A stretch of DNA of 64,000 bases from Bugula neritina (Eukaryota; Animalia; Bryozoa). The stretch spans positions 33,098,773 to 33,162,772 of the forward strand of contig OZ037766.1 in assembly GCA_964035545.1 (NCBI GenBank), written 5' to 3'. Below, in pieces: positions 3,188 to 35,605 of the stretch; the first letter of the stretch is position 1; every line of letters starts with the position of its first letter. The notes under the pieces were generated by a model. That model saw only the letters and a program-made list of their open reading frames with translations. It was not told the DNA's origin and searched no databases. The translations under genes and the position numbers were made by a program.

Positions 3188-6100
3188 CTAGCTACAGAGG
3201 TCATTGGCAGAGTTGTATCTCAGTGTTTTATCAGCACATGTAGAGAACAGTAGAAAGTGTATTCTCTCTCCTCTGGTATTTGGTCTAGCTTCAACAGTCC
3301 TGGAAAATGTACACAGTAAATGTTATAGCAAGCTGTACTATATATAGAAACAGTGACAACTGAAATCTAATATTTACATTCTTGCAGCATTTTATTACCT
3401 TATTTTATAACTTAATTGTGTATTTTACTACAAAATTATTAGCTGTTCGACCAAACTATAGAGAAAAACATTACCTGTGTAACTTCATAAAAGGACACTT
3501 TAAGAAACAGGCAACTCACCTATTTCTGGGTGCCTGAAACTTAACATTTGAGTATTCTGTCTCGTGACCAACCAGTCTCTCTCAGTTCATCTCTTAGTTT
3601 ATCAGGAACTTCCTTAGTGACTAAAGAGAAGGTCTTGTCAGTTGGCCAATAGACTGTCAGCTCATTTTTCTTACACGTATACCAAGTTTCTATCTCAGAA
3701 GACATGTTGCAGTCTAAATAAAATTAGTAAATATTCTAGTTTAAATAGTGATGACATTATTTTTCTCAATTTACCAATAATAATACAACAACAATAAAGT
3801 TACCATGAGCACAGATTGTTTGAAGGTGTCTCTTTTGCTGAGATATGGAAGGTATCAGGAACTCTCTGTTGTATGCATTCTTTACAAGCTGACAAGAAAC
3901 ATCATATCTATTCACAAACATCAGTCTCCTTGTTATCGGTGATTCTGTAAGTAAATATAAATAAAACACGGGATATAATGTGATCCTTGTTTATAACGCA
4001 AATAGGAAGTATTTTACTTTAATTTGAATGACCATGCATGACAATATACAGCATAATCAAAACCCCAAGTATATAACAGCATGAACTTGTATAATTAAAA
4101 CTTATAATATGCTAATAAATATATTAACATTATGTTATACCACATGATTACTCAATTCTTCATCTTAGCAGAAGTTCTATTATGATGACCTTTATTTGGT
4201 TTCTCCTCAAATATATTTGTTGAATTGACCGAATAGGTAAAGTAAATTAAGCTATAAAGTTGAGAAAAATACATTTTCATTTAAGTTTATTAAAATCATG
4301 ACTTACTCAAAACATTGATGTTGTAGACAGAACACTGTATAAAGAACTTGTGACTTCCTTCAGATAGATATGCTGTGGAGGAACATCCTGGTAAAGTGTA
4401 TGTGGTTGTACTCTGTCCTGGATCCAAGTATACAGTCACATTATGAGGCTCGCAGATATCTGAACCTGTATATGTTGAGAGGAATTTCCTGACTATAATA
4501 AACTTACTTAAAAGTTGACATAGATAATATTCATAAATTGGTCTTTGGATAAACCTAATTAGTAGATACAGTGTGATTTCATGCAAATATTTACAATATA
4601 GCAGCTAAGTTCTAATGTGACATAATTTGCAAACATTTAGATGTAGCTGTGATCGATTATAGAATAATTTAGTATGTATTCTATGTATATTTAGTCTATG
4701 TATATATGTATTCTATATTCTCACCACTCAACTTGTAGATGCCTTCACTCCACATACCAACATACACATCCTCTCCTACTTTCAGTAGAGAATATGGCTT
4801 GTCTGGTAATTGAGAGCTGATTGTACAGGAAGTCTCTCCATCAAAACACACAGGACCTACTTGTTTACTATTCAAATCTAACAGTCTGAGTACCTTGTTA
4901 TTATAATCAGCAACAAGATACATGTTGTACCCAACTCTTGTTATTCCTGAAGGATAATAAAACCTGGATGTATTGAAACTTCTATCAACATAACCAGAAG
5001 ATAATGAACCTGCTAGTTTAATGTTTGTAACAGATCCATCGGCATCCCAACTGACTTGAGATATGTAATGGTTATTAATCACTAGTAACTTGTTGTCAGC
5101 CCAAACTAAGTAACTAGGGTAGTTGAAACCTGAGTTAATAACAGTACTCAGTTCTCCTGTGTGAAGGTCTACAGATCTCAGTGCATGGTTATATCTATCA
5201 GTAACTAACAACCTGTCTGGGTTTCTAACATCTATCTCAATACCATAAGGGTAAATCAGTTTACCAGTACCTACTCCACCCTCAACATACCCCCATCTGC
5301 CACATGTCCCTGCTAAGGTACGTAAGCTGTTATCTACTCTGTTTAACATCTTAATACAATACTGGAAAAAATCTGCTACAGCTACATGAGTTTTATTCAC
5401 TTGTTTAAACCCTGCAATAGAACTTGACTGAATAGTTGCTAGAGTTGTAGGAGTTGTCCCATCTGTAGTGTTAAGGTATTCCCAGGTACTAAACATAATA
5501 CTCCCATCATCTCTGTACAGGTCCAGCTCCATGTGGTAAATGGCCTCATCAGTGTTAAGGAATATTTCTGGTTTGTTGAATGAAACACTGAAAGTAAGTT
5601 AAGCAGGTTCAACCATTAATACTGAATAGGAATGTTTTATTTTTGACTAAAACTCATTCAAACAAAGTATGATATACTGTGTTGTTATTCAAGATCACTC
5701 AATACCCTAATTTGCACTAAATGTGTGTATCAAGTGTGTCAATTAGTCTGATTATTATCTTAATGTTTTATAAAAGAATTACGACCTTCTTTGTCTAACT
5801 TAAACTTTATGCTTTGCTTCATTTCCAGCCAAAAATGTTATAACATCCAAAAATATATATAAATTTACTTCTATTTAAATTTATACTATCTAAATTGCTT
5901 TGCTTATAGTGCATGTTTATAAATTTAAGCATTTAAAAATGTGTTACATTAAAACTGTAATCATACGCAGTAAATTTAAGTCAATAAACTTGGGCTCAGG
6001 AGTTGACTGTAGAAGAAACAGGGATGGAAGGGAAAGAGATGGGGGGGGGGGAGATAGAGGTTAACAAAGTTGAAAAATCACAGAGCAAACAAAAGGTGAC

Positions 6101-7851
6101 TTTACCTTGAGGTCTGACAATCCATCAGTTTGAGTAGTGCTACTAGAATCTACAATATAAAGTGATGTGATCTGATCACAAATAAATGTCTGCTTCACTT
6201 TTGTACACAGCAAGATACTGCAGGGAGCAATTACTCCACTGCTTTCTCAATAAAATATTTCATTATATTGTGTAACAATTATTTCTTCTAAATCTAATAA
6301 CAGACACTTATAGTAGCCATAACAGGTGTATAATTATGTGATGTAATAATTAGTTATAATAATTAGTTATATATATATAAATAAATACTTACAACCAATC
6401 TAACGCTCTTTTATAATAATATAGTGTGTATACATATTATTATATAACACAGTGTAAACTACACAGTATATTGTATAGTGTGTATATATATTATTATATA
6501 ATACAGTGTAAACTACACATTATATTGTATAGTGTGTATACATATTATTATATAATACAATGTAAACTACACAGTATATTGTATAGTGTATATATATTAT
6601 TATATAATACAGTGTAAACTACACAGTATATTGTGTAGTGTATACATATTATTATATAATACAGTGTAAACTACACATTATATTGTATAGTGTGTATACA
6701 TATTATTATATAATACAGTGTAAACTACACAGTATATTGTATAGTGTGTATACATATTATTATATAATACAATGTAAACTACACAGTATATTGTGTAGTG
6801 TATACATATTATTATATAATACAGTGTAAACTACACATTATATTGTATAGTGTGTATACATATTATTATATAATACAATGTAAACTACATAGTATATTGT
6901 ATAGTGTGTATACATATTATTACATAATACAATGTAAACTACACAGTATATTGTATAGTGTATACATATTATTATATAATACAGTGTAAACTACACATTA
7001 TATTGTATAGTGTGTATATATATTATTATATAATACAGTGTAAACTACACATTATATTGTATAGTGTGTATACATATTATTATATAATACAATGTAAACT
7101 ACACAGTATATTGTATAGTGTGTATACATATTATTATATAATACAATGTAAACTACACAGTATATTGTATAGTGTGTATATATTATTATATAACACAGTG
7201 TAAACTACATAGTGTATTGTATAGTGTGTATACATATTATTATATAATACAGTGTAAACTACACATTATATTGTATAGTGTGTATATATATTATTATATA
7301 ATACAATGTAAACTACATAGTGTATTGTATAGGGTGTATACATATTATTATATAATACAGTGTAAACTACACAGTATATTGTATAGTGTGTATATATATT
7401 ATTATATAATACAGTGTAAACTACATATAGTATATTGTATAGTGTGTATACATATTATTATATAATACAGTGTAAACTACACAGTATATTGTATAGTGTA
7501 TACATATTATTATATAACACAGTGTAAACTACACAGTATATTGTATAGTGTGTATATATATTATTATATAACACAATGTAAACTACACAGTATATTGTAT
7601 AGTGGGTATATATTATTATATAATACAATGTAAACTACACAGTGTATTGTATAGTGTGTATACATATTATTATATAACACAATGTAAACTACACAGTATA
7701 TTGTATAGTGTGTATACATAGTTTATTCATAAATTTAATATAAAGAATATATACCATAGGCTACTATATATAATATCTTAATATAATATGAATAATATCT
7801 CATGGTATGCATTCAGATACTCACAATAAAGTACAAATACTGTCCCATCAT
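3188..7851 (-). CDS. Secreted NHL-repeat beta-propeller protein, copy A (2-nt deletion in exon 6 truncates the C-terminus)
   Basis: Exons 7851-7825, 6149-6106, 5587-4725, 4465-4307, 3944-3804, 3713-3520, 3299-3188, all GT-AG. N-terminus MMGQYLYFIILVALLKLMDCQTS is signal-like. NHL motifs include LAGTCG..GYVEG, YPYGIEID..LLVTDRYNHALRSVD and RFYYPSGI..YLVADYNNKVLRLLD. Exon 6 is 194 nt versus 196 nt in the paralogs. Confidence 0.8.
6421..7720. repeat. 54-bp minisatellite (about 24 units) in intron 1 of copy A
   Basis: Same unit as 411-700. Confidence 0.95.
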
Positions 7852-10366: not shown

Positions 10367-13300
10367 CTAGCTACAGAGGTCATTGGCAGAGTTGTATCTC
10401 AGTGTTTTATCAGCACATGTAGAGACCAGTAGAAAGTGTATTCTCTCTCCTCTCGCATTCGGTCTAGCTTCAACAGTCCTGGAAAATGTACGGTACAGTA
10501 GAAGTCTTAAGACACAATAAAATAATATATGGTAACAGTGACAACTAAATCCTAATATTATACATTTTTGCAGAATTGTATTTCCTACTTTATTTTTGTG
10601 ACTTATTTGTGTATTTTATTATAAAATTATTAGCTGTTCAACAAAACTATAGAGAAAAACATTACCTGTGTAACTTCATAAAAGGACACTTTAGGAAACA
10701 GGCAACTCACCTATTTCTGGGTGCCTGAAACTTAACATTTGAGTATTCTGTCTCGTGACCAACCAGTCTCTCTCTCAGTTCATCTCTTAGTTTATCAGGA
10801 ACTTCCTTAGTGGCTACAGAGAAGGTCTTGTCAGTTGGCCAATAGACTGTCAGCTCATTATTCTTACACGTATACCAAGTTTCTATCTCAGAAGACATGT
10901 TGCAGTCTAAACAAAACACAAAAATATTCTATTTTAAATACTGATGACATTATTTTTCTCAATTTACCGATAATAATACAACAACAATAAAGTTACCATG
11001 AGCACAGATTGTTTGAAGGTGTCTCTTTTGCTGAGATATGGAAGGTATCAGGGACTCTCTGTTGTATGCATTCTTCACAAGCATACAAGAAACATCATAT
11101 CTACTCACAAACATCAGTCTCCTTACTATTGGTGACTCTGTATGTAAATATAAATAAAACATGAGATATAATATAATCTTATACCACAAATAGCTTCTTA
11201 CGTTACTTTGAATGACCCACCATACATGAAAGAATACAAATCCCTATATGGTATAACAGCACGAATTTATATAATTAAAACTTATAATATGCTAATAAAT
11301 AGATTATTGTACTGGGTGATCACTAATTCTTCATCTTAGCAAAAGCTCTATAATGTTGACTTATTTTATTTGGCTTCTCCTCAGATATGTTTGTTGAATT
11401 GATCAAATAGGTAAAATGAATTCAGCTATGAAATTGAGAAAAATACATTTTCATTAGGGTTTATGAAACGTATGACTTACTCAAAACATTGATGTTGTAG
11501 ACAGAACACTGTTTAAAGAATTTGTGACTTCCTTCAGATAGAAATGTTGCGTAGGAACATCCTGGTAGAGTGTAGTAAGTCTTACTCTGTCCTGGATCCA
11601 AGTGTACAGTCACATTATGTGACAAACAAACCCCTGAAACCATAAGTCAGACATGCAAAAAGATTTGCTGATTATTTAAGTCTTCTTTGATTGTTCTAAA
11701 ACCTTATATAAAATAGTCAAGTGAAAACTGTTTGTCAATGGGTCATTTTACTTAATTTAGTACACACTCAAAATCTTCAGTTTTTGGCTATTTTTCACAA
11801 TTCAGCTGGTAATGAACATGGTTTTTTGGATAAAACTAGTAAAACACCAATAAATACACCTAAATAATCAAAGTTCTTTTTAGTTTTGCTTCATTTCCCA
11901 TGTTTTTCTCTAATTATTCAGCTAGTTTTGGTCACGGACCGTTACGGTTTTTTCGTAACGGTCTGCACATATAGAATATTAAGTGCATATGACAATGACT
12001 TGTGCTTTAATGTTGGGGAATCCCCTTCCAGCCTTTTCTGTTATGCGTAGTTAAGACCAGCACATAAAAATACCGTGTATAGTAAATTTCAATTGATTTT
12101 GAGCAAACTTTAATGTTAGGTCATAAGTTGCTGGTGTGTACTAAATAAAGTAAACTGACTCCAATGTAAAATAATTGCCCCCACTGGGAATCGAACCGAG
12201 TCCTCTGGCTTGCAAGCAAGTGTGCTACCATTACACCACCGGGGCCACTGGGTTAACTCAACACTACACCCTACCCAGTTCTCTGAACTCCACTGGCCTA
12301 TCTACTACTCCTTCAGTCATCAGGCTCCAATGGCCTCTCAACTCCCTCGGAATATACTGCAACTACTACATTTCACTAAAGGCCGAAATAGCTTGTAAAA
12401 TAATTGCCCCCACTGGGAATCGAACCGAGTCCTCTGGCTTGCAAGCAAGTGTGCTACCATTTCACCGCGGGAGCCTCTGGGTAAACGCAACGCTACAGTT
12501 AATCCAATTACTCGAACTTCAAAACATATACAGCATTTGACAATATCATAAGTAGATATATAAATAAGTACACATAAATTGGTCTATTGATAGACTCACT
12601 TAGAGGTTACAACAGGTCCATTTGTAATTTCTATTCATATTTTAATTTCTAATATTTGAACTTATTGGCTATATAGTTTTTGATATACTTTAATAAGTTT
12701 ATATAATAATAGTTTGAATTTAGAAGATACATTATAATTTAAATTTTATCAACAGTGTGCAAAAATAAAATTAAGACACGTTCTTTATATGAGCTCACAC
12801 TCAGTATTTTTTAAACCAAAGAGCTGTGAAAACATAATTTTGTATCATTTTCACCATCTTGTTAGACAAAAACATTTTATAGAAATTGAAGTCACTGTAG
12901 TGTTTCACTAATATGATAACACACAGAATAGCTAGCTATTAGTTTGAGGGAGATTTATAGAAATTATATGACACGTTCAAACAGATGTATACTGATTGTT
13001 ACACACATATATTATAATATATTCCTCACCACTCAACTTGTAGATACCTTTATCCAAAGTACCAACATACACATCCTCTCCTACTTTCAGTTTAGACAAT
13101 GGATAGCCTGGTAATTGAGAGCTGATTGTACAGGAAGTCTCTCCATCAAAACACACAGGACCTACTTGTTTACCATTCAAATCTAACAGTCTGAGTACCT
13201 TATTATGATCAGCAACAAGATACATGTTGTACCCAACTCTTGTTATTTCATTAGGATAATAAAACCTGGATGTGTTGAAACTTCCATCAACATAACCACG

Positions 13301-15590
13301 AGATAATGAACCTGCTAGTTTAATGTTTGTAACAGATCCATCTGCACCCCAACTGACCTGGGATATGTAATGTTCATTACTCACTAGTAACTTGTTGTCA
13401 GCCCAAACTATATTCCTAGGGTATCTGAAACCTGAGTTAATAACAGTACTCAGTTCTCCTGTATGAAGGTCTACAGATCTCAGTGCATGGTTATCTCTAT
13501 CAGTAACTAACAACCTGTCTGGGTTTCTAACATCTATCTCAATACTATAAGGATAGCTTAGCCTACCAGTACCTACTCCACCCTCAACATACCCTCTACT
13601 ACCACATGTCCCTGCCAAGGTGCGTAAGCTGTTATCTACTCTGTTTAACATCTTAATACAATGCTGGGAATAATCTACTACAGCTACATGAGTTTTATTC
13701 ACTTGTTTGAACCCTGTAATAAAACTTGACTGAATAGTTGCTAGAGTTGTAGGAGTTGTCCCATCTGTAGTTTTAAGGTATTCCCAGGTACAAAACATTA
13801 TACTCCCATCATCTCTGTACAGGTCCAGCTCCATGTGGTAAATAGGCTTTTCAGCGCTAAGGAATAGTTCTGGTTTGTTGAATAAAACACTGAAAGTAAG
13901 TTAAACTGGTTCAACCATTACTGAGTGGGAATTTAATTTTTGACTAAAATTCATTCAAACAAAATATAATATACTGTATTGTTTATTCAAGATCACTTTA
14001 TACCTTAATTTGCAATAAATGTATTTTCTGCCATATATTCTACTCATTACGTTATAGAAGATTATTCTCTTAGTATTTTATAAAAGAATTACGGCCTTCT
14101 TCATCTAATTATGTTTTATGCTTTGCTTCATTTCTAGCCAAAAATGTTTTAACATCCAAACTGGCAAAAAATATGTAAAGTTGCTTCTATTGAAATTTAT
14201 AGGCTACTGTCTAAATTGCTTTGCTTATAGTGCATGTTTATAAATTTAAGCGCTTAAAAACGTGTTACATTAAAACTGTAATCATACAGTAAATTTAAGT
14301 CAATAAACTTGGGCTCAGGGAATGGGCTGTAGAAGAAACAGGGGTGGAGGGAAGAAAATGAAGAGGGGAGGTAGGAGTTAGCAACTACAGAGCAAACAAA
14401 AAGTGACTTTACCTTGAGGTGTGACAATCCATCAGTTTAAAGAGTGCTACTAGAATCTAAAATATAAAGTGATGTCATCTAATCACAAATAAATGTCTAC
14501 TTCACTTTTGTACACAGCAAGATACAGGAAGCAATGACTCCACTGCTTTTTCAATAAAATATTTCATTATATTGTGTAACAATTATTTCTTCTAAATCTA
14601 ATAACAGACACTTATAGTAGTCATAGCAGGTGTATAATTATGTGATGTAATAATTAGTTATAATAATCAGTTATAATAATTAGTTATAATAATTAGTTAT
14701 ATATACTATAAATAAATACTTACAACCAATCTAACGCTCTTTTTATAATAATATAGTGTGTATATGTATTATTATATAGCACAATGTAAACTATATAGTA
14801 TATTGTATAGTGTGTATACATATTATTATATAACACAATGTAAACTACACAGTATATTGTATAGTGTGTACATATTATTATATAACACAATGTAAACTAC
14901 ACAGTATATTGTATAGTGTGTATACATATTATTATATAATACAATGTAAACTACACAGTATATTGTATAGTGTGTATACATATTATTACATAACACAATG
15001 TAAACTACACAGTATATTGTATAGTGTGTATACATATTATTATATAATACAAGGTAAACTACATAGTATATTGTGTAGTGTGTATACATATTATTATATA
15101 ATACAATGTAAACTACATAGTATATTGTATAGTGTGTATACATATTATTATATAATACAATGTAAACTACATAGTATATTGTATAGTGTGTATACATATT
15201 ATATAATACAATGTAAACTACACAGTATATTGTATAGTGTATACATATTATTATATAATACAATGTAAACTACATAGTATATTGTATAGTGTGTATATAT
15301 ATTATTATATAATACAATGTAAACTACACAGTATATTGTATAGTGTGTATACATATTATTATATAATACAATGTAAACTACACAGTATATTGTATAGTGT
15401 GTATATATATTATTATATAACACAGTGTAAACTACATAGTGTATTGTATAGTGTGTATACATAGTTTATTCATAAATTTAATATAAAGAATATATAGGCT
15501 ACTATATATAATATCCTAAATATAATATGAATAATATCTCATGGTATGTATTCAGATACTCACAATAAAGTACAAATACTGTCCCATCAT
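10367..15590 (-). CDS. Secreted NHL-repeat beta-propeller protein, copy B (intact, about 510 aa)
   Basis: Exons 15590-15564, 14456-14413, 13889-13030, 11633-11481, 11137-10997, 10906-10711, 10478-10367. Phases join into an open frame ending YNSANDLCS*. Confidence 0.85.
11737..12166. mobile_element. MITE-like element in intron 3 of copy B
   Basis: Imperfect ~30-bp inverted ends (caatgggtcattttacttaatttagtacacac / gtgtgtactaaataaagtaaactgactccaatg) and an internal hairpin gaccgttacg..cgtaacggtc. No clear TSD. Confidence 0.45.
12175..12246 (-). pseudogene. tRNA-like sequence (tRNA pseudogene or SINE head), copy 1 of a tandem pair
   Basis: GCCCCGGTGGTGTAATGGTAGCACACTTGCTTGCAAGCCAGAGGACTCGGTTCGATTCCCAGTGGGGGCA has A box, B box and cloverleaf stems. 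The anticodon loop is only 6 nt (TTGCAA) with stem mismatches, so the isotype is ambiguous. Confidence 0.65.
12404..12475 (-). pseudogene. tRNA-like sequence, copy 2 of the tandem pair
   Basis: Near-identical to 12175-12246, with a period of about 229 bp. Confidence 0.6.
14753..15461. repeat. 54-bp minisatellite (about 13 units) in intron 1 of copy B
   Basis: Same unit as 411-700. Confidence 0.95.
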
Positions 15591-18009: not shown

Positions 18010-21000
18010 CTAGCTACAGAGGTCATTGGCAGAGTTGTATCTCAGTGTTTTATCAGCACATGTAGAGACCAGCAGAAAGTGTATTCTCTCTCCTCTCGCA
18101 TTTGGTCTAGCTTCAACAGTCCTGGAAAATATACGGTACAGTAGAAGTCTTAAGACACAATAATATAATATGGTAACAGTGACAACTAAAATCTAATATT
18201 ATACATTTTTACAGAATTGTATTTCCTATTTTATTTTTGTAACTTAATTGTGTATTTTACTATGAAATTATTAGCTGTTCAACAAAACTATAGAGAAAAA
18301 CATTAGCTACCTGTGTAACTTCATAAAAGGACACTTTAGGAAACAGGCAACTCACCTATTTCTGGGTGCCTGAAACTTAACATTTGAGTATTCTGTCTCG
18401 TGACCAACCAGTCTCTCTCTCAGTTCCTCTCTTAGTTTATCAGGAACTTCCTTAGTGACTACAGAGAAGGTCTTGTCAGTTGGCCAATAGACTGTCAGCT
18501 CATTATTCTTACACGTATACCAAGTTTCTATCTCAGAAGACATGTTGCAGTCTAAACAAAATACAAAAATATTCTATTGTAAATAGCGATGACATTATTT
18601 TATTTACAAACAATAATACAACAACAATAAACTTACCATGAGCACAGATTGTTTGAAGGTGTCTCTTTTGCTGGGATATGGAAGGTATCAGGAACTCTCT
18701 GTTGTATGCATTCTTTACAAGCATACAAGAAACATCATATCTACTCACAAACATCAGTCTCCTTACTATCGGTGATTCTGTGTGTAAATATAAATAAAAC
18801 AAGGAATATAATATAACCTTTGTTTATAACGCAAAGTATATAACAGCATGAACTTATATAATTAAAACTTATAATATGCTAATAAATATATCAACATTGT
18901 ACCACATGGTTACTCAATTCTTCATCTTAGCAGAAGCTCTATAATTTTGACTTATTTTATTTGGGTTTTGCTCAGATATATTTGTTGAATCGACCTAATA
19001 GGTAAAGTAAATTAAGCTTAAAGTTGAGGAAAATACATTTTCATTTAAGTTTATTAAAATCATGACTTACTCAAAACATTGATGTTGTAGACAGAACACT
19101 GTTTGAGGAACTTGTGACTTCCTTCAGATAGATATGCTGTGTAGGAACATCCTGGTAAGATGTATGTAGTTGTACTCTGTCCTGGATCCAAGTATACAGT
19201 CACATTATGTGGCTGGCAGATACCTGAAACAGTATGTTGAAAAGAATTTCCTGACTATAATAAACTTACTTAGAAGTTGACATAGATAAATACTCATAAA
19301 TTGGTTTTTGGGTAAACTTAATTAGTAGATACAGTGTGTTCACATGCAAATATTTGCAATACAGTAGCTAAGTTCTAATGAGACATAATTTACAGACATT
19401 TAGATGTAGCTTTGATTGATTATAAAATGATTTAGTATGTATTCTATGTATATTTAGTCTATGTATATGTTTGCTATGTACTTGCCACTCAACTTGTAGA
19501 TACTTCTCCACATACCAACATACACATCCTCTCCTACTTTCAGTATAGACAATGGCTTGGCTGGTAATTGAGAGCTGATTGTACAGGAAGTCTCTCCATC
19601 AAAACACACAGGACCTACTTGTTTATTATTCAAATCTAACAGTCTGAGTATTCTATTATTATAATCAGCAACAAGATACATGTTGTACCCAACTCTTGTT
19701 ATTCCCTTAGGCCATGAAAACCTGGATGTATTGAAACTTCCATCAACATAACCAGGAGATACTGAACCTGCTAGTTTAATGTTTATAACAGATCCATCGT
19801 CACCCCAACTGACCTGAGATATGTAATGGTTATTACTCACTAGTAACTTGTTGTCAGCCCAAACTATATTCCTAGGGTATCTGAAACCTGAGTTAATAAC
19901 AGTACTCAGTTCTCCTGTGTGAAGGTCTACAGATCTCAGTGCATGATTAAATTCATCAGTAACTAACAACCTGTCTGGGTTTCTAACATCTATCTCAATA
20001 CTATCAGGTCCATCTAGTCTACCAGTATCACCTACTCCACCCTCAACATACCCTGCTATACCACATGTCCCTGCTAAGGTATGTAAGCTGTTATCTACTC
20101 GGTTTAATATCTTAACACAATGCTGGGGATAAGCTACTACAGCTACATGAGTTTTGTTTACTTGTTTAAACCCTGTAATAAGACTATTTTGAATAATTGC
20201 AAGAATTGTAGGAGTTGTTCCATCTGTAGTTTGAAGGTATTCCCAGGTACTAAACATAATACTCCCATCATCTCTGTACAGGTCCAGCTCCATGTGGTAA
20301 ATGCCCTTTTCAGTGCTGAGGAATAGTTCTGGTTTGTTGAATGAAACACTGAAAGTAAGTTAAACTGGTTCAACCATTACGGAGTATAGGAATGTTTTAT
20401 TTTTGACTAAAATTCATTCAAACGAAATATAATATAATGTGTTGTTATTCAAGATCACTCAATACCTTAAGTTGTAATAAATGTGTGTGTATCAAGTGTA
20501 TCAATTAGTCTCATTATTATCTTAGTGTTTTTCTAGAAGAATTACGGCCTTCTTTGTCTAACTTAAACTTTATGCTTTGCTTCATTTTCAGCCAAAAATG
20601 TTTTAACATCCAAAAATATATATAAGTTTGCTTCTATTGAAATTTATAGGCTACTGTCTAAATTGCTTTGCTTATAGTGCATGTTTATAAATTTAAGTGT
20701 TTAAAAATGTGTTACATTAAAACTGTAATCAAACAATAAATTTTAGTCAATAAACTTGGGCCCAGGGAATGGGCTGTAGAAGAAACAGGGGTGGAGGGAG
20801 GAGATGGTAAGAGAGAAAGTTGAATAATCACAGAGCAAACAAAAGGTGACTTTACCTTGAGGTGTGACAATCCATCAGTTTAAAGAGTGCTACTAGAATC
20901 TAAAATATAAAGTGATGTCATCTGATTACAAATAAATGTCTACTTCACTTTTGTACACAGCAAGATACAGGAAACAATGACTCCACTGCTTTCTCAACAA

Positions 21001-21719
21001 AATATTTCATTATATTGTGTAACAATTATTTCTTCTAAATCTAATAACAGACACTTATAGTAGTCATAGCAGGTGTATAATTATGTGATGTAATAATTAG
21101 TTATAATAATCAGTTATAATAATTAGTTATAATAATTAGTTATATATACTATAAATAAATACTTACAACCAATCTAACGCTCTTTTATAATAATATAGTG
21201 TGTATATATATTATTATATAGCACAATGTAAACTACATAGTATTTTGTATAGTGTGTATACATATTATTATATAACACAATGTAAACTACATAGTATATT
21301 GTATAGTGTGTATACATATTATTATATAACACAATGTAAACTACATAGTATATTGTATAGTGTGTATACATATTATTATATAATACAATGTAAACTACAC
21401 AGTATATTGTATAGTGTGTATACATATTATTATATAATACAATGTAAACTACATAGTATATTGTATAGTGTGTATATATATTATTATATAATACAATGTA
21501 AACTACATAGTATATTGTATAGTGTGTATACATATTATTATATAATACAATGTAAACTACACAGTATATTGTATAGTGTGTATACATAGTTTATTCATAA
21601 ATTTAATATAAAGAATATATACCATAGGCTACTATATATAATATCTAAATATAATATGAATAATATCTCATTGTATGTATTCAGATACTCACAATAATGT
21701 ACAAATACTGTCCCATCAT
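18010..21719 (-). CDS. Secreted NHL-repeat beta-propeller protein, copy C (GC-AG intron 3)
   Basis: Exons 21719-21693, 20899-20856, 20348-19486 (donor GCAAGT), 19223-19071, 18777-18637, 18551-18356, 18121-18010. The frame stays open throughout. Confidence 0.82.
21195..21588. repeat. 54-bp minisatellite (about 7 units) in intron 1 of copy C
   Basis: Same unit as 411-700. Confidence 0.95.
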
Positions 21720-23699: not shown

Positions 23700-24000
23700 A
23701 CCAAGCAGTTGTGGTGTGTAATGGTTAGCGCACTTGTGTGCAAGTCCGAGGTCTGTGATAGTAACCCAAGTACAGGAGGGGGAAGTTTTATAACTAATTC
23801 CAGCGGTTAGTGAAGTGTGGTAGTACTCCGAGAAGAGTTGAGTGGTCAGGGAAACTTGAAGTAGTAGTATAAAAAAGGTAGCTGAGTTCTTGAAAAGTGG
23901 GTAAGGTGTAGTGTCGAGAGCACCCAGTGACGCTTGCAATGTAGTGGTGAGTGCGCCTGCTTGCAGGCTGAAGGTCTCAGCATGATTCAAAGTTTTGTAG
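23700..24000 (+). pseudogene. Degenerate tandem tRNA-like dimer carried inside the transposon
   Basis: ggtgtgtaatggttagcgcacttgtgtgcaag.. and gtagtggtgagtgcgcctgcttgcagg.., plus a spacer homologous to the reverse complement of 12246-12404. Confidence 0.5.
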
Positions 24001-26251
24001 CGGTCAAATTCTTTTTTGTGCTCCTATGCAGCATCTTTGAGTGCATGTTCTCAAAAAATGTTATGGGATCTACAACAAAAGATAAAAGTTGGGTAATATT
24101 TAAACTGTATTAGTATGAACAGTAAAAATTTAGTTAAGATATACAATCACAAGCAGCGTAAATAAATTAAGTTCAACTTTGAAGAAGCTGAAGTCTAAGG
24201 CCAAAACTAATAGTATAGTATCAATGATGTTAGCTATGAATCTTTCAGCATATTTTCAGCACCATCGTACCAATCGTTTGACTCTGAATAACCACACAGG
24301 CTTTGGCAAACTTATGATCATTATGTTGCGTAGGGTTTGGGTTGGTTTGAGCTTATCAAAATTTAGTAACAATTTTGGCCATCATTTTTATTTTACTTCT
24401 TTCTTAATTACAAATGCAAGAGCTGTTGGGCATAATTAGTTTAGTTAATAGAAGCTTCTCTGCATTAAAATTATCTCAAAATGTCAGTGAACCACAATTT
24501 AAGCTAGATTCAGCGTTTTATATGGACCCCTCATATCGAGATAACAGATATTGATAAGTTTCAGTATGTCTATAAATTGAAAAACAAATAAAGTACTACC
24601 AAGAAAGATATTGCTACTTAAACACGTTTTTATATTTAATTGTGCTGTGCAAAGACAAATAAAAGAATAAACTGGTAGCAAGGAAGTTAATAAAAGATTT
24701 TGCCAACTTTGCCAACTCACCACTAATATTGGCATTTTGGTACTTAGCTATAAGACAAGAAGCTAGCTTGGCAGCTGCTTAAGGCTAATAACTACTTGTA
24801 GGCTGCTAAACTGCATTATTAACAATACTTCTACAATGGGGGGGGGGGGGAGAATTCAAATTAATGAATTTAGCACAACTTGCTAGAAGGTGAAGTGGAA
24901 ATAAAACGCTAAATTTTTTGAAAATAGATTGTTACAGGAAAACTCGTATCAAATTGATATAGGAATAGAGTAGTTTGGGAAATATCAGTCAATGTGGTCT
25001 CTTAAAAGTTATAGTTGCACAATTAATTCAATTATCTGTCTACAGCAATAGTCATACTGTCATTGTGATATAAAATGACAAATGATTGAGCTTACCTTTT
25101 GCTGCAATGACAACTTCAGTTCCTAACTCTGAAAGAAAGTGATCATCTTCTATCTCTGAGAGGTAGCTGCAATCTTTACCCATTTGATGAAATGATTCAA
25201 TGTTTTCCATGTTGTGAAGTTGTTTGGAAGCACAAATTCACTGAATCTCAAAGCACAACCTCTTAGTCTGAGCCTCTGGTGTTCACTATGCCAGCAAAAT
25301 ATTTCTTCTGTCAATAGCCGTGAATGAAAACGATGTGCTGTTATGTAATAACCTTTGTTTTGCTCTTTCGATGCTTGGTAAGCCAGTTTCTTGCCTTTGA
25401 ATTACAATTTAAATATTTCTTTACTATAGCTCTGTTATGCAACATCTTCTTTTGTTCCACCAGGTAGTTTACACAAGTTACTTAGGCTTTTGAAGTGGTT
25501 CACCTGATCCACAATTGACTATTCAGTAGCTTGCTTCATTGTTAATTTTAAGCTTCTTGTTTAAAACACATTTGCTGATAACTGAGTACATTGAAGTTTA
25601 ATGGTGCATCTCCCCGATCTCTCTTTTACACACATTTTAAATTAGTTTGCTTTCCTTTCCATGAATGAAATTGACTAGTGAAGCCTAAACTACCCATGCA
25701 AGAGATATGTGCAGTTGAAGTTTTTTGTTGATAAATTCAACTTAAGTCTTTGATAAACAGAGTGGGGCGATGTTTAATAGTAGTCTGGTAACAAGCTATT
25801 TGAAAATGTCTTGGGTTCAAAAAAATCTACAAATCATAAACAGCTAGTAGGTTGAAGGAGTTTCATTTCACTTATATGCTCCCCAGTTAGGTTGTATTTT
25901 TTGTTTTGGTACTAAGTATTATATACCTATATACCCTTATATAACTTTCATATCGATTGCTAAACATAAATTATAACCATTAATATGATATATTTGCAAT
26001 AATATTTAAATTTTCCCAAATTTGTGTTGAAAAAAAGCATTAAATGCATTAATAATAACATTTTTTTCCAAAAAACAAAAAAATATAGAAAATGCAAAAT
26101 TAATAAGTTTATTCAGAGCAAAGAAATTTATTTCTGTGCCAATTATAAAAAGCAATTGACTCAAATTTATTTAAATACACATATATTTCAATAGTGTTCA
26201 AATAAATTGCATGTAAAATGTATAATTAGCATCTAACTGGGAAGCACCAAT

Positions 26252-29200
26252 AGACCATGTAAAACTCAGCCAATCAGCGAAGTGTACCAGGTCAATGTCT
26301 TACCATTGTAACTGATATAAAATTCTGCAAGTTCAATTGCAAAATGCATGCTTCTAAAAGCTAGTTGTGCAACTTTTTTTTCATGCATTATTTAATTTCA
26401 TATCTTAAATTGATGACTCTTGAAATGATTTTTCAAAATGTCTAAATTAAGTGTTTATAAAACTCAATTAAAAATTGCATGTCTAGAAAAATGACCTGGT
26501 ACACTTTTGCAACTTAAGGCCAATTATTACATAACTGCCAGCTTAGTAGTTATTTGTTGTTGCAGCTTGAATGGGTTATTGTTTAGCATTGGAAGCTTGC
26601 AGTAAACATCTGTGAATTTGGTACATGACTTCGATTGGCTGGTTTTTGAATGGCCCTTTAGTATATGCATCTGGATGGCTGGGTAGTGTAAACTCCGCCT
26701 ACATCTAGCTAATGTACAGTAGCCAATCCACAGTAGTATTACAAAATTTCTGTTTAAGAAATAAAATATTCTGGTCATTTGTTTTGTACTTTACAATAGT
26801 AAATATTCTATTCAACTAGAATTTTATTGTTTGTAAGCCATGGGAACTACTAAGAGGTTAAATCAACCACCTATGCTGGTAATATTGTTGCTCGCAGTAA
26901 TAGCAAGTCCACACCGTATAAATATACACATAAGCTATTATGTGCAGCTTATGAATGCTGAAATGACCCCATTTCTTACTTTCAATTTGAAAAAAATTGT
27001 ATTACATATTCTGCCACTTCTGCATCAAGAATTTGTTTTCCTTTTAAATTTTGAAAATAGTAGTCAGTTTCTGCAGCAGTCAACTGCATTCACAATAAAC
27101 AACGTAAGCCTTCAAATAAACTATAAATATATGAAATATTAGTGTGGAAACAATGTAATTTAGTTCTTGCTATGATGAAAAATTACAAGAATATTATATA
27201 AAAGCTAGATATAGATTTCTATATAATGGCACAGGTAAAAATAACACATTTTTACTTCAAATTCTAAATTTCATCAGTCACCAATGGTGGCTGTAGATTA
27301 CAGAGAGCACAGCAGACTATCATAATCATAAGGATGGTCAGTCCACTGAGCAAAATCCAACTCCAACCTTTCATTTGGGTTACCAACGCACTAAAGCATA
27401 TAATGTAAGACGCACAAAAAACAGTGGTTTTAATGAAACATGTGAAGGAAGCAAACAGAAAACGTTATCAACAGAGTCAGCTGATATAGAGCAACAGAAC
27501 TCATCTGACAGCCATCCTCATAGTCAGGCTTCATCAGAAGTAACTGAGTTACCAGAATCATCAACTACTTAGAAAAAATGATCTGCACATTCTATTGATA
27601 GACGAAAATCAAAAGTTGGAAGAAAAGGCTTAAAAAGTTCCACGTTTAAACAAAAAGCAACTATTGAAAAAGTAAAAGTTTTTAAAACTTTCACCACTAC
27701 AGATGAGCAAACTAAATTCTATACTGGAATACCTACACGTTTTCTATACTATTTTTTAGCAAGGTGAAAATTATAATTTTCTTATTGCAAAGATAGACTA
27801 TGGTTTATTACAAATAAACAATGCAAGTCTCACTATGCTAAAATTTCTACATTGATTAAATTTGATGTGTAGTAAAACTGTCATTTTAATTAAATTTGTT
27901 GCAGTGTGAGTACATCATTCATACATTTTTTATTAAAGATGTTGTTTTATGTAAGATATTCATAAATACCGCAGTGGTCATCTGTATGCTTTGACTTATT
28001 TAGTTTAGGGTTTTATTTAAACAAGCAGCAGTCTTTTATTTGTGGCAAATTGACTCACTTTCTCCAGGAAAAGTAAATTGTTTTGACTTAAATTTTCCTT
28101 GGTTTATTTTAAAGCTTATCAAAAGTGGCCTCCTAATCTAATTTTTAGCTGAAACTAACTCAGTGTTCAAAACTAAAATGGCATACACTTGTTACTAGTT
28201 TCACTTATTCACAAACATTATTAAATGCTATTCTAGAAATAATATGGATTTGAATTAGTTATAGTATAATTATAAAATGAAGTAATAAGTGTTTGTCAAC
28301 ACTATTTGTTTAAACTCATAACTTCATTCAAAGCATGTATTCATACAACTAGCTTACCATGTACTGTTACAATATTATGTAACACATGTTGACACACATT
28401 ACATTCTGTTTGGATGGTGATATATTGGGTCAAGCCTTCAGCTAGCAGTTATTGAACTTCATAGTTGTTGCAAAATATAACTGAAGCTACTTACCAGAGG
28501 GTAAAAACTGCTGAATGAATACAAACTAAGCCCAAAATTTATTTAGCACATACATTATAATTTGAATCATAATTTAATTTTCATTCTTTATTTTCTATAT
28601 TTAGATTTATATGTCCGGAGATAAAAGTTCTCACTCTCAGAAAAAAGTTAACAAGACAAGATAAACTTTTATTGGCTTTGATGAAGCTGCGTCAAGGTTT
28701 ACAGTTTCAAATACTTGCTGACCTTTTTTATATCTCTAGATTGCTAGCAAGCAAAACTTTCAAAAACACATGAGATATTTTAGCAAGAGAACTGAACAAT
28801 CTAATAGTTTTTCCAACAAGAGAGAAGCTGAACATCCCTCTGAGTTTTCAAAGCCAATATGCTACCATATATTTATAGTTAATTTGAAAGCTTACGTTGT
28901 GGATGTTGACTGCTGCAGAAACTGAATACTATTTTCAAAATTTAAAAGGAAAACAAATTCTTGATGCAGAAGTGGCAGAATATGTAATACAATTTTTTTC
29001 AAATTGAAAGTAAGAAATGGGGTCATTTCAGCATTCATAAGCTGCACATAATAGCTTATGTGTATATTTATACGGTGTGGACTTGCTATTACTGCGAGCA
29101 ACAATATTACCAGCATGGGTGGTTGATTTAACCTCTTAGTAGTTCCCATGGCTTACATACAATAAAATTCTAGTTTAATAGAATATTTACTATTGTAAAG

Positions 29201-29737
29201 TACAAAACAAATGACCAGAATATTTCATTTGTTAAACAGAAATTTTGTAATACTACTGTGGATTGGCTACTGTACATTAGCTAGATGTAGGCGGAGTTTA
29301 CACTACCCAGCCATCCAGATGCATATACTAAAGGGCCATTCAAAAACCAGCCAATCGAAGTCATGTACCAAATTCACAGATGTTTACTGCAAGCTTCCAA
29401 TGCTAAACAATAACCCATTCAAGCTGCAACAACAAATAACTACTAAGCTGGCAGTTATGTAATAATTGGCCTTAAGTTGCAAAAGTGTACCAGGTCATTT
29501 TTCTAGACATGCAATTTTTAATTGAGTTTTATGAACACTTAATTTAGACATTTTGAAAAATTATTTCAAGAGTCATCAATTTAAGATATGAAATTAAATA
29601 ATGCATGAAAAAAAAGTTGCACAACTAGCTTTTAGAAGCATGCATTTTGCAATTGAACTTGCAGAATTTTATATCAGTTACAATGGTAAGACATTGACCT
29701 GGTACACTTCGCTGATTGGCTGAGTTTTACATGGTCT
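26252..29737 (+). mobile_element. Nested ISL2EU-like (PIF/Harbinger group) element with ~880-bp inverted arms and a decayed THAP/HTH transposase
   Basis: Termini AGACC..GGTCT with an AT TSD in a caATtg target. Arms 26252-27132 and 28866-29737 are near-identical inverted copies. Remnants include THAP-like LCAAYEC..; HKDGQSTEQNPTPTFHLGY (about 27326-27385); FYTGIP; and HTH-like DKLLLALMKLRQGLQFQILADLFYIS..LIVFPTRE (about 28660-28825), with stops. Confidence 0.8.
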
Positions 29738-31519
29738 ATTGAAATGACCCAAATGTAGGGTTCAACTTCATCCTAGCTTCCTATAAAGGTTTGTGATCAT
29801 CATTAGTGCGCATGTGAACGAATAATGTTGTTAGGTGAACAACTGCCAATTGTTCCATAATTCTTATGTAAATAAAATTTTGCTTGAACATATGTAGTTG
29901 CAGCATTGATCTCACTTTCTGCTCCTATCAACTACTGTTTAGCTTCATTCAGACCTAGGGATGATGATTACGTAATACTTGTGAAAAGTAGCTTTGACTT
30001 AACAACTAAGTGGTTTCAGAGCTACTACAAAATATTTTTCAGCTTACACTAATCAGATTAATTTTCAATTTCATTAAAATAAGTGCAGGTCTAACAACTA
30101 TTAGAGGTGTGGTGCAGGCTATACCGACAATAAAAGGCTCTTTGAACAACTTTAGTGCAAGCGCTGCACTAATATTTCTCTCTGTGTACAATATGTTATT
30201 CAATGTTCTTTAGCTATTAGTTCCTATATATATAAGTCACTTATGTATACAAGATGGCTATGTGTATATTATATGATGTAATGTATACAACATGGTTGTG
30301 TGTGTATACAATATGATGTAATGTATACAAGATGGCTGTGTATATATTATATGATGTAATGTAATTTGATATGAGAATAAAGTTTCTGATAGATCAAATG
30401 ATAGGATAAATATCTGCATTAAACCAGTTTAAACAGGATTCATGTCATGTGACAGACAGAGCCTGTGTTCTATCATCTTATTAAAGACAGGCATAGCCTG
30501 TGTTCTATTATCTTATTAAAGAAAAATACAATAGCAGCTGTAGGCATCATTTCTATGTCATTAGAACACAGTTTATATCTGTGACTCCCAAATGTTTATA
30601 GTTCAATGTTTTATGTATAAACTTTAATACTGTTTGTTTATTTTATTGAAACCTCAAATTTCAACTCTTAAATATTTAACAGAAAGATGTCATGCCAGAT
30701 GTTTCCCTGTTTACTGCAGTGTTGATTTGACACAGTTTGCTTTCCAGCTCCCTTTACCATTCCAAAGTATATCAATATTATGTAACTCTACTATCTGTCA
30801 TTGCCTGTGATTGTAGTATATTTAATTCAGTTTTAGTTTGTTATAGAAAGTGATACTTTGCTAAACCAATCAGATGTTGATATTTAACTTGTTAGTATTA
30901 TTAAGATATAAACTGACACAAAGAAGTAATTCAACAAGAAACTAGTGGAGTATTTTTATCAATGACATTCAGCAAAGATAAGTTAACCACATGGCAGTAT
31001 CATAAACACAAACCAAAGTTACTTTTTGACTCTTTATTGATTCTCATATCAAAAACAAGTTCTGTGAAAAGATACCAGTATTATATACTAAGTCATAATA
31101 TTCTACATATATAGTAAACAATACAATATTTTTACAATAGTATAATTTGTTGTTAAAGCTAATTAAGTATAAAAACAAGCCTTCAATTTGAGTTATTCAC
31201 ATCGTCTATTTTTTTCACATGCAGAGTAACTCACTTTAAATATTTACCAAGAATTGCAAAAAAAGAGAAATAAGGTGGGTTTGATGTAGTTAAGGTATGC
31301 ATTGTACTTTTGTTAGTATACATGCAGCTGCTAAAATAAACTCATATAATAGTAAAACATTTGGCAGAAAGCTTAGAGCTATTTATTAAATGATTTAGTT
31401 TGTTTTTCATTTTAATTTTTTGCTGCGTATGTCAGCCATGTTAAACTGATGTCTCAGTGAAAGTTAGTGACAAAAGTCATTGACAGAGTTGTAGACAGAG
31501 GTCATTGGCAGAGTTGTAT

Positions 31520-34500
31520 CTAGCTACAGAGGTCATTGGCAGAGTTGTATCTCAGTGTTTTATCAGCACATGTAGAGAACAGTAGAAAGTGTATTCTCTC
31601 TCCTCTCGCATTTGGTCTAGCTTTAACAGTCCTGGAAAATGTACACAGTAAATGCTATAGCAAGCTGTACTATATATAGAAACAGTGACAACTGAAATCT
31701 AATATTTACATTCTTGCAGCATTTTATTACCTTATTTTATAACTTAATTGTGTATTTTACTATGAAATTATTAGCTGTTCGACCAAACTATAGAGAAAAA
31801 CATTACCTGTGTAACTTCATAAAAGGACACTTTAGGAAACAGGCAACTCACCTATTTCTGGGTGCCTGAAACTTAACTTTTGAGTATTCTGTCTCGTGAC
31901 CAACCAGTCTCTCTCTCAGTTCATCTCTTAGTTCATCAGGAACTTCCTTAGTGACTACGGAGAAGGTCTTGTCAGTTGGCCAATAGACTGTCAGCTTATT
32001 ATTCTTACACCTATACCAAGTTTCTATCTCAGAAGACATGTTGCAGTCTAAACAAAATACAAAAATATTCTATTGTAAATAGCGATGACATTATTTTTGT
32101 TTATTTACAAACAATAATACAACAACAATAAAGTTACCGTGAGCACAGATTGTTTGAAGGTGTCTCTTTTGCTGAGATATGGAAGGTATCAGGGACTCTC
32201 TGTTGTATGCATTCTTTACAAGCTGACAAGAAACATCATATCTACTCACAAACATCAGTCTCCTTACTATCGGTGATTCTGTATGTAAATATAAATAAAG
32301 CATGAGATATAATATAATCTTCGTTTATATCATAAATAGCAAGCAGCTTTTACTAAATGGTGATTGACCTACCATACATGGCAGAATACAAACCCCAAGT
32401 ATATAACAGCCCGAACTTATATAATTGAAACTTATAATATGCTAATAAATATATTAACTTATATCACATGATTACTCAATTCTTCATCTTAGCAAAAGCT
32501 CTATAATTTTGACTTATTTTATTTGGCTTCTCCTCAGATATGTTTGTTGAATTGATCAAATAGTTAAAAACAATTCAGCTATGAAATTGAGAAAAATACA
32601 TTTTCATTTAAGTTTATTAAAATCATGACGTACTCAAAACATTGATGTCGTAGACAGAACACTGTATAAAGAACTTGTAACTTCCTTCAGAAAGATATGC
32701 TGTGGAGGAACATCCTGGTAAGATGTATGTAGTTGTACTCTGTCCTGGATCCAAGTATACAGTCACATTATGTGGCTGGCAGATACCCAAACCTGTATGT
32801 TGAAAAGAATTTCCTGACTATAATAAACTTACTTAGAAGTTGACATAGATAAATACTCATATATTGGTCTTTGGATAAACTTAATTAGTGGATACAGTGT
32901 GTTCTCGTGCAAATATTTACAATACAGTAGCTAAGTTCTAATGTGACATAATTTACAAAAATTTAGATGTAGCTTTGATTGATTTTGAAATGATTTAGTA
33001 TGTATTCTATGTATATTTAGTCTATGTATATGTTTTCTATGTACTCACCACTCAACTTGTAGATACTTCTCCCCATACCAACATACACATCCTCTCTTAC
33101 TTTCAGTATAGACCATGGTACATTTGGTAATTGAGAGCTGATTGTACAGGAAGTCTCTCCATCAAAACACACAGGACCTACTTGTTTACTATTTAAATCT
33201 AATAGTCTAAGCATTCTATTTTTATGATCAGCAACAAGATACATGTTGTACCCAACTCTTGTTATTCCCTTAGGCCATGAAAACCTGGATGTAATAAAAC
33301 TTCCATCAACATAACCAGGAGATACTGAACCTGCTAATTTAATGTTTGTAACAGATCCATCGTCACCCCAACTGACCTGAGATATGTAAAGGTTATTACT
33401 CACTAGTAACTTATTGTCAGCCCAAACTATATTCCTAGGGTCTCTGAAACCTGAGTTAATAACAGTACTCAGTTCTCCTGTGTGAAGGTCTACAGATCTC
33501 AATGCATGATTAATCTGATCAGTAACTAACAACCTGCCTGGGTTTTTAACATCTATCTCAATACCATAAGGCAAATCTAGTCTACCAGTACCTACTCCAC
33601 CCTCAACATACCCTGGTATACCACATGTCCCTGCTAAGGTACGTAAGCTGTTATCTACTCTGTTTAACATCTTAATACAATACTGGTTAGTAGCTACTAC
33701 AGCTACATGAGTTTTGTCCACTTGTTTGAACCCTGTAAAAGAACTTGTCTGAATAGTTGCTAGAGTTGTAGGAGTTGTCCCATCTGTAGTTTTAAGGTAT
33801 TTCCAGGAACTAAACATAATACTACCATCCTCTCTGTACAGGTCCAGCTCCATGTGGTAAATGGTCTTATCTGTGTTAAGGAATAGTTCTGGTTTGTTGA
33901 ATGAAACACTAAAAGTAATTTAAACTGGTTCAACCATTACGGAGTATAGGAATGTTTCATTTTTGACTAAAATTCATTTAAACAAAATGTAATATAATGT
34001 GTTTTTATTCAACATCACTCAATACCTCAAGTTGCAATAAATGTATTTTCTGCAATATATTCGACTCATTACGTTATAGAGTGTTTTATAAAAGAATTAC
34101 GGCCTTCTTCATCTAATTATGTTTTATGCTTTGCTTCATCTTCAGCCAAAAATGTTTTAACATCCAAATTGGCAAAAATATATATAATTTTGCTTTTATT
34201 GAAATTTGTATGCTACTGTCTAAATTGCTTTGCTTAGCGCATGTTTATATATTCAAGTGTTTAAAAATGTGTTACATTAAAACTGTAATTATATAGTAAA
34301 TTTAAGTCAATAAACTTGGGCTCAGGGAATGGGCTGTAGAAGAAACAGGGATGGAGGGAGGAGATGGGGAGAGAGAGAAAGTTGAATAATCACAGAGCAA
34401 ACAAAAAGTGACTCTACCTTGAGGTGTGACAATCCATCAGTTCAAAGAGTGCTACTAGAATCTACAATATAAAGTGATGTCATCTGATCACAAATAAATG

Positions 34501-34804
34501 TCTACTTCACTTTTGTACACAGCAAGATACTGCAGGAAGCAATTACTCCACTACTTTCTCAACAAAATATTTTATTATAATATTGTGTAACAATTATTTC
34601 TTCTAAATCTAATAACATACACTTAAAATAACCATAGCAGGTGTTTAATTATGTGATGTAATAATTAATTATAATAATCAGTTATAATAATTAGTTATAT
34701 ATACTATAAATAAATACTTACAATCAATCTAACGCTCTTTTGTAATAATATAGACACCATAAATAAATACTTACAACCAATCCAGAGTAAGATGCCATTC
34801 TCAT
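31520..34804 (-). CDS. Secreted NHL-repeat beta-propeller protein, copy D (intact, divergent exon 1)
   Basis: Exons 34804-34775 (MRMASYSGLV), 34461-34418, 33908-33049, 32792-32634, 32278-32138, 32047-31852, 31631-31520. Confidence 0.82.
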
Positions 34805-35394: not shown

Positions 35395-35602
35395 TGAAAC
35401 TACATAATACAATGTAAACTACACAGTATATTGTATAGTGTGTATACATATTATTATATAACGTAGTGTAAACTACACATTATATTGTATAGTGTGTATA
35501 CATATTATTATATAACACAATGTAAACTACATAGTATATTGTATAGTGTGTATACATATTATTATATAACACAATGTAAACTACACAGTATATTGTATAG
35601 TG
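35395..35602. repeat. 54-bp minisatellite (about 4 units) directly after the PLA2 stop codon
   Basis: Same unit as the NHL intron 1 minisatellite. Confidence 0.9.
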
Positions 35603-35605
35603 TCA

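Follow-up and report, generated by a model that had tools for sequence, protein, structure and literature searches.

A tandem NHL-propeller gene family in the bryozoan Bugula neritina as a candidate repertoire of secreted recognition proteins

Four paralogous genes and the family to which they belong

We analysed a stretch of 64,000 nt of the Bugula neritina genome (contig OZ037766.1, positions 33,098,773 to 33,162,772; hereafter the window), in which an earlier note, made from the letters alone, had pointed to a tandem family of secreted NHL beta-propellers that vary on one face. The window is AT-rich eukaryotic DNA, with a GC content of about 0.3, and lies on a chromosome-scale contig, here called C2, of a 216-Mb genome. 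It contains four paralogous open frames on the minus strand (4696-5532, 12977-13834, 19454-20293 and 33017-33853), of 278-285 aa, which belong to genes 1 to 4 in that order. Their propeller exons show 81-86% protein identity to one another, and ~70% of the residues are invariant among all four. As the note had reported, the four exons share long invariant stretches, all three of those that it quoted being present, and differ at defined loop positions; every variable motif that it quoted was found where it had been placed, among them IYPYG/SYPYS/DGPDS/DLPYG, DFFQY/DYSQH/AYPQH/ATNQY and CGRW/CGSR/CGIA/CGIP.

The genes follow a seven-exon plan (Table 1). Their signal peptide is encoded by exons 1 and 2 and their six-bladed NHL propeller by exon 3, and exons 4-7 code for a tail of ~200 aa that contains cysteines. 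A natural, transcript-derived member of the family, the 520-aa protein P0053, is encoded by a spliced RNA contig of 1925 nt; the seven blocks in which this contig aligns with G000:C7:14593649-14598085, at identities of 79-98%, confirm the architecture. P0053 has a clear signal peptide; its propeller spans residues 38-320, and its 200-aa tail contains cysteines and does not end in a hydrophobic stretch. Splice sites are kept in the nine closest copies of the family, the one exception being gene 3, in which the donor that follows exon 3 is GC and not GT.

The fold of the propeller was predicted with AlphaFold2 from exon 3 of gene 1 and 31 family sequences, yielding 24 strands in six blades with a mean predicted local distance difference test score (pLDDT) of 95.5 and a predicted template modelling score (pTM) of 0.92. 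Foldseek matched this model with probability 1.00 to NHLRC2, Thin, TRIM71, the teneurin NHL domain and PknD; SOQ1 was among its matches too (query template modelling scores, TMq, of 0.65-0.74). In addition, phmmer retrieved the NHL domains of SOQ1 and NHLRC2 among Protein Data Bank (PDB) sequences with E values of 1e-12 to 1e-9. The Pfam NHL profile (PF01436) stayed below its cut-off of 20 in all four window copies (18.1 bits, 14.2 bits or nothing), and a precomputed PF01436 match exists for some family members. The assignment to NHL propellers thus stands on structure and on matches to PDB sequences but not on the Pfam profile, and we read the window propellers as divergent NHL propellers. 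The model predicts, with high confidence, a rigid scaffold, and this scaffold tolerates radical changes at defined positions. The tail gave no match to Pfam, either exon by exon or as part of P0053, and an AlphaFold2 model of P0053 residues 319-520, built from a shallow alignment, was of low confidence (pLDDT 43.8) and provided no reliable structure; its secondary structure leaves no more than an impression that the tail may consist of two modules of ~100 aa.

The propeller exon has no fewer than 126 matches in the genome. They are clustered at 24-28 Mb and 33 Mb of C2 and at 13.5-14.7 Mb of C7, and a more distantly related cluster lies on C8. The close C2 subfamily consists of nine copies with 82-87% protein identity to gene 1: besides genes 1 to 4, it includes two copies immediately upstream of the window and another three at distances of up to about 170 kb; the C7 copies are ~55% identical to those of C2. 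The tails are homologous between subfamilies at 30-40% identity. All 21 of the more distant exons that we examined are intact, and open frames are kept in all 32 exons examined. At the one C8 locus that we examined (L043, G000:C8:7923500-7930500; open reading frames at 2419-3459 and 6457-6642, both on the minus strand) the propeller is 22-30% identical, and no RING domain was found within 4 kb upstream. A short open reading frame with a transmembrane-like stretch lies there 3 kb upstream of the propeller, and the propellers of C8 could form a distinct, membrane-anchored family.

Selection on propeller codons and the location of selected sites

Across the whole propeller exon the pairwise ratio of nonsynonymous to synonymous divergence (dN/dS, Nei-Gojobori) was 0.73, a remarkably high value given that ~70% of the residues of this domain do not vary among the four window copies. 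We fitted codon site models with our own Goldman-Yang likelihood (F3x4 codon frequencies, all branch lengths optimised). For the nine C2 copies and two outgroups, the single-ratio model M0 gave an omega of 0.77, and the log-likelihood rose from -4083.78 under M1a to -3976.80 under M2a, a likelihood ratio test (LRT) statistic of 214, with 9.7% of codons at an omega of 7.7 and 18 sites at P > 0.95. Ten C7 copies yielded a similar picture (M0 omega 0.82; M1a -3947.80; M2a -3833.27; LRT 229), with 7.4% of codons at an omega of 10.9 and 19 sites at P > 0.95. Conversely, 57% of codons had an omega of 0.13, and the blade cores are under purifying selection.

Ten residues, numbered as in the propeller exon of gene 1, were selected in both subfamilies (15, 74, 98, 112, 131, 197, 210, 213, 263 and 265; the codon of residue r starts at position 5586-3(r-1) and takes in the next two lower positions), an overlap with an odds ratio of 64 (Fisher p 1.6e-10). 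At selected codons dN reached about 0.66-0.71, against a neutral level of ~0.13. This excess persisted in cross-validation: sites chosen in C7 and measured in C2 had a dN of 0.71, as compared with 0.13 for the dS of the remaining codons, and the reverse comparison gave 0.58 against 0.11. Single-nucleotide differences at the 29 selected codons were synonymous and nonsynonymous in proportions of 15:320 in C2 and 17:152 in C7; the high Nei-Gojobori dS at these same codons is a product of averaging over multiple-hit paths. We also considered a mutational hot spot or hitch-hiking, and rejected both on finding that the dS of codons adjoining the selected ones equals the background. Together, these results show that about 20-30 codons of the propeller sequence are under strong, recurrent diversifying selection.

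To locate these codons on the propeller we partitioned the exon a priori, using the strand order of the model. The d-a and b-c loops (91 codons) had a dN of 0.204 and a dS of 0.193, as compared with 0.053 and 0.116 for the a-b and c-d loops (53 codons) and 0.067 and 0.125 for the strands (143 codons). The d-a and b-c loops or the adjoining strand ends hold 16 of the 18 selected sites of C2 and all 19 of C7, and just one selected site falls in a loop of the opposite face. Selection recurs at positions -2, -1 and +1 relative to the conserved NHL proline, which stands where strand A is entered, and at the first residues that follow the strand-B aspartate. Because each blade is a four-strand meander, the d-a and b-c loops necessarily share one face, and the selected sites would be expected to form a contiguous patch. 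By convention this face is the ligand-binding top of NHL and WD40 propellers, and it is through their d-a and b-c loops that Brat and TRIM71 bind their ligands. Diversifying selection on this face, in a propeller carried on a conserved tail, is what the earlier note had proposed, and both its presence, with omega well above 1 at those sites, and its clustering on one side are borne out.

The position of the selected residues, ringing the entry of strand A beside the central channel, is also that of the active site in six-bladed propeller enzymes of the lactonase, PAL and strictosidine-synthase types. The proteins might accordingly be secreted enzymes or toxin-like effectors, with a pocket at the top of the channel diversifying in an arms race with prey, predators or foulers, and virginiamycin B lyase does appear in the Foldseek list. 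However, the best matches in sequence and fold are the non-enzymatic NHL domains of NHLRC2, SOQ1, Thin, TRIM71 and teneurin, and neither the window exons nor P0053 match any Pfam enzyme family, so that we regard diversification of an enzyme or toxin as quite unlikely.

Divergence was also compared across gene parts, as p-distances among the nine close copies over BLAST-based partitions of alignable sequence. The propeller exon differed by 0.10 and the alignable introns by 0.08-0.13, contrary to the claim that introns and spacers are nearly identical. With introns as diverged as the propeller exon, the contrast between exon and intron that had been offered as support falls away, and the case for selection rests on site-wise dN/dS. 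The conservation of the last exons was, on the other hand, evident, with p-distances of 0.08 in exon 4, 0.038 in exon 5, 0.021 in exon 6 and 0.039 in exon 7. At the codon level the C2 tail exons, with a dN/dS of 0.37-0.72 and a dS of 0.03-0.08, are under purifying selection. The synonymous divergence of tail exons 5-7 (0.03-0.08) is two- to four-fold below the divergence of the propeller exon (0.13) and of the flanking introns (0.08-0.13); this low dS could be due to selection on the RNA or to homogenisation limited to exons.

Expression, secretion and structure of the tandem array

Contigs from three RNA-like runs and from one oligo-dT metatranscriptome were aligned with gene 1. They cover exon-sized blocks of the gene alone and skip the intervening stretches at GT-AG boundaries. 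Spliced RNA-like contigs of the family thus exist, so that a lack of expression, which the note had named as a refutation, does not apply. Inspection by eye revealed no membrane anchor in P0053 or in the tail translations of the window. Full-length P0053 has no RING, B-box or coiled coil in Pfam, and the N-terminus, as read in gene 4, is encoded by two short signal-peptide exons. In a word search with the P0053 tail for further full-length relatives, P0053 itself was the sole match, and a search of the ESM Atlas for such relatives produced no usable match.

Secretion had been proposed for the family as a whole. Judging from sequence, it is supported by the P0053 transcript for one member and predicted for gene 4, which keeps an ATG-bearing exon 1 and a signal-peptide-like N-terminus over exons 1 and 2, with homology to an upstream copy (U1) continuing through the region; the proposal does not extend to genes 1-3, where a minisatellite abuts intron 1. 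A search of the window for the exon 1 pattern returned a single occurrence, in gene 4, and none upstream of genes 1-3. In these three genes and in one upstream copy, homology to the 5' region of gene 4 ends ~20 nt below exon 1, at the start of the minisatellite. This AT-rich 54-bp repeat (4-24 copies) is found upstream of every gene copy, each with an array length of its own, and in four of the six tandem copies it replaces about 650 bp that include exon 1 and the presumed promoter.

The spacer between genes 3 and 4 contains an insertion of ~7.2 kb (22957-30186) that accounts for their 13.5-kb spacing; it holds an inverted duplication of ~600 bp (26527-27142 against 28892-29462) and probably represents a transposable element. 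An insertion of ~1.4 kb (11621-13007) lies in intron 3 of gene 2 and is found in this gene alone; within it, ARAGORN identified a tRNA-like sequence at 12176-12245, suggesting a tRNA-derived short interspersed element. Just upstream of gene 4 lies an unrelated open reading frame (36241-36594, minus strand) with a CCxxHxxCY-like cysteine motif, which recalls secreted proteins of the phospholipase A2 type. Several long tandem arrays with periods of 5-47 nt (41534-41961, 52089-53468, 53621-54460, 57516-58560 and 59775-61100) take up the right-hand third of the window, and the long open reading frames within them are repeat artefacts.

Table 1. Exons of the four propeller genes and minisatellite arrays, in window coordinates
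Feature	Position	Strand	Remarks
Gene 1 exon 7	3188..3299	-	last coding exon in the frame of intact copies; TAG stop 3190-3188; joint 3298/3520
Gene 1 exon 6, tail	3520..3713	-	194 nt, against 196 nt in 7 of 9 copies
Gene 1 exon 5, tail	3804..3944	-	splice sites; p-distance among nine paralogs in text
Gene 1 exon 4, first part of tail	4307..4465	-	splice sites; contig joint 4463-4466/4723-4725
Gene 1 exon 3, propeller	4725..5587	-	287 whole codons, 5586-4726; GT-AG joints 5587/6106 and 4465/4725
Gene 1 exon 2	6106..6149	-	end of signal-peptide h-region; acceptor and donor in sequence; contig joint 5587 to 6106
Gene 2 tail exons 4-7	10367..11633	-	11633-11481, 11137-10997, 10906-10711, 10478-10367; intact, 200 aa
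Gene 2 exon 3, propeller	13030..13889	-	open frame and conserved splice sites
Gene 3 tail exons 4-7	18010..19223	-	19223-19071, 18777-18637, 18551-18356, 18121-18010
Gene 3 exon 3, propeller	19486..20348	-	open frame; GC donor at 19486
Gene 4 tail exons 4-7	31520..32792	-	32792-32634, 32278-32138, 32047-31852, 31631-31520
Gene 4 exon 3, propeller	33049..33908	-	open frame and splice sites
Gene 4 exons 1 and 2	34418..34804	-	exon 1 from ATG 34804 to 34775, exon 2 34461-34418; encode MRMASYSGLV and ILVALFELMDC...
54-bp minisatellite	6420..7720	.	24 copies, in place of gene 1 exon 1 and promoter
Same 54-bp array	14752-15463		at exon 1 position of gene 2
Same 54-bp array	21194-21588		at exon 1 position of gene 3
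Same 54-bp array	35404-35603		upstream of the intact exon 1 of gene 4
Same 54-bp array	410-700

A candidate repertoire of soluble binders and its relation to known systems

These genes belong to a large, tandem, lineage-specific multigene family, whose proteins join an NHL propeller to a signal peptide in front and a constant tail behind, and in which one propeller face is under diversifying selection. We consider it probable, taking all parts of this explanation jointly, that the face serves a ligand-binding repertoire. The variable face would then be the ligand-binding surface, and the family as a whole would supply soluble binders of many specificities, encoded in the germline. The likeliest targets would be non-self ligands, whether microbial, symbiont or conspecific, and the conserved tail could serve all members alike, for example in assembly or in docking to one receptor or effector that they share. 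The results show that duplication and, in the C2 copies, recombination or gene conversion between paralogs shuffle the family.

Several observations weigh against this reading. Recognition, be it of immune, allorecognition or symbiont type, is what we infer from sequence, and the assignment of the selected sites to the top face comes from strand topology (the DSSP string of the model), not from coordinates. The RNA contigs are 93-96% identical to the propeller exon of gene 1, so that expression is shown for the subfamily and not for single copies. In the assembly, genes 1-3 are without the signal-peptide exon 1. Exon 6 of gene 1 is 2 nt short in a (GA)n run near 3575, which causes a frameshift and a TAA stop at 3546-3544; the resulting tail, in gene 1 and in one upstream copy (in L031), has 157 aa as compared with ~200 aa, and exon 7 of gene 1 is untranslated if the frameshift is real. 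The two extra letters at 3575 are present in about half of the depth of the RNA-like contigs, both lengths being seen, and because the stop lies ~25 nt ahead of the last exon junction, the message should escape nonsense-mediated decay. Some copies may thus be non-secreted or decaying. The site models, moreover, are our own implementation and not that of PAML or HyPhy, and the C2 copies recombine (pairwise homoplasy index, PHI, p <= 0.001), with trees that differ between exon segments, a condition that can inflate the LRTs of site models. We countered the latter effect in three ways: with four exon segments, each on its own tree, which still gave LRTs of 26.2, 46.2, 51.8 and 53.5; with the less recombining C7 set, whose signal was weak and not significant (PHI p 0.087); and with the pairwise counts described above.

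Detectable recombination, the missing first exons, the frameshift and a propeller exon no more diverged, as a whole, than its introns are also what could be cited in favour of there being no adaptive diversification at all, but unconstrained loops in decaying duplicates that gene conversion has scrambled. Relaxed constraint, however, cannot raise dN to about five times dS and intron divergence, nor does it fit a synonymous share of 4-10% among single-step changes, where about 25% is expected. The same sites are selected in two independent subfamilies, the nearly neutral model M1a is rejected with LRTs above 200, and both the open frames of all the examined exons and the strong constraint on most codons speak against decay. 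We therefore judge this explanation very improbable.

Allorecognition is a further alternative for this colonial animal, in which the variable faces could act as individuality labels that decide between colony fusion and rejection, as do Alr1/2 in Hydractinia and FuHC in Botryllus. Strong diversifying selection on a surface patch is in line with this idea, as are seven further distinct C2-type variants from another sample, each at most 87% identical in protein to any copy in the genome. Known allorecognition systems, however, depend on an extreme polymorphism of alleles at a single locus or a small number of loci, which usually encode membrane proteins, whereas the diversity described here lies between more than 100 paralogs of a soluble protein. 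Nor do the extra variants behave as alleles: in the JGI contigs that we considered for this role (L044-L046), introns are as diverged as exons, at about 90-92% identity, and from their sequence we interpret them as further paralogs or as copies from a diverged lineage. Searches of the full-text literature found no bryozoan allorecognition gene for comparison. Classical allorecognition is thus unlikely, and ranks below general non-self recognition of the immune type because the diversity is paralogous and not demonstrably allelic; diversification of enzymes or toxins ranks lower still, and neutral decay is rejected.

Returning to general non-self recognition, the preferred reading, one may go further and suppose that the family is the principal extracellular non-self repertoire of this bryozoan, an NHL counterpart of the lamprey VLRs and snail FREPs, with over 100 germline specificities on a common tail directed against microbes and possibly used to keep the bacterial symbiont or neighbouring colonies in check. 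We put this forward tentatively, as a possible but rather doubtful extension. To our knowledge, no molecular players of bryozoan immunity or allorecognition have been reported, and our full-text literature searches returned no description of such a family and no NHL family in bryozoans. The genes offer a sizeable and concrete set of candidates, whose variable surface is mapped to about 20-30 residues on one face, and targets that can be cloned for binding assays; the propeller itself may interest protein engineers.

Among proteins that share the six-bladed fold, such as NHLRC2, the lumenal domain of SOQ1, TRIM71, Brat and Thin, the teneurin NHL domain and the sensor of PknD, the bryozoan family differs in its domain partners and in its scale. 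The RING, B-box and coiled coil that form the N-terminus of TRIM-NHL E3 ligases are absent here, as judged from the Pfam domains of P0053 and from the signal-peptide exons, and there is no thioredoxin or kinase partner; instead, the propeller is combined with a signal peptide and a novel cysteine-containing tail of 200 aa, in a family that is massively expanded and hypervariable. Tachylectin-2 and the tectonins are secreted propeller lectins of innate recognition whose binding sites are repeated blade by blade, but they are five-bladed or built of tectonin repeats, and show no sequence or Pfam match to the proteins described here.

A further analogy may be drawn with the snail FREPs, amphioxus VCBPs, sea-urchin Sp185/333 proteins and lamprey VLRs, which are encoded by tandem genes, are secreted, join a variable module to a constant part and are under selection on their binding surface. 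The bryozoan genes resemble them in their tandem clusters, their signal peptide, the variable head on a constant tail and the selected surface patch; they differ in using an NHL propeller as scaffold instead of a fibrinogen, immunoglobulin, leucine-rich repeat or repeat-peptide module, and we have no evidence of somatic diversification. If the analogy holds, the family would be an example of convergence, adding another scaffold to those on which the variable-head, constant-tail design of antibodies, VLRs and FREPs is built. That design, a diversified secreted recognition family, is known; what is new is its occurrence in a bryozoan and on an NHL-propeller scaffold.

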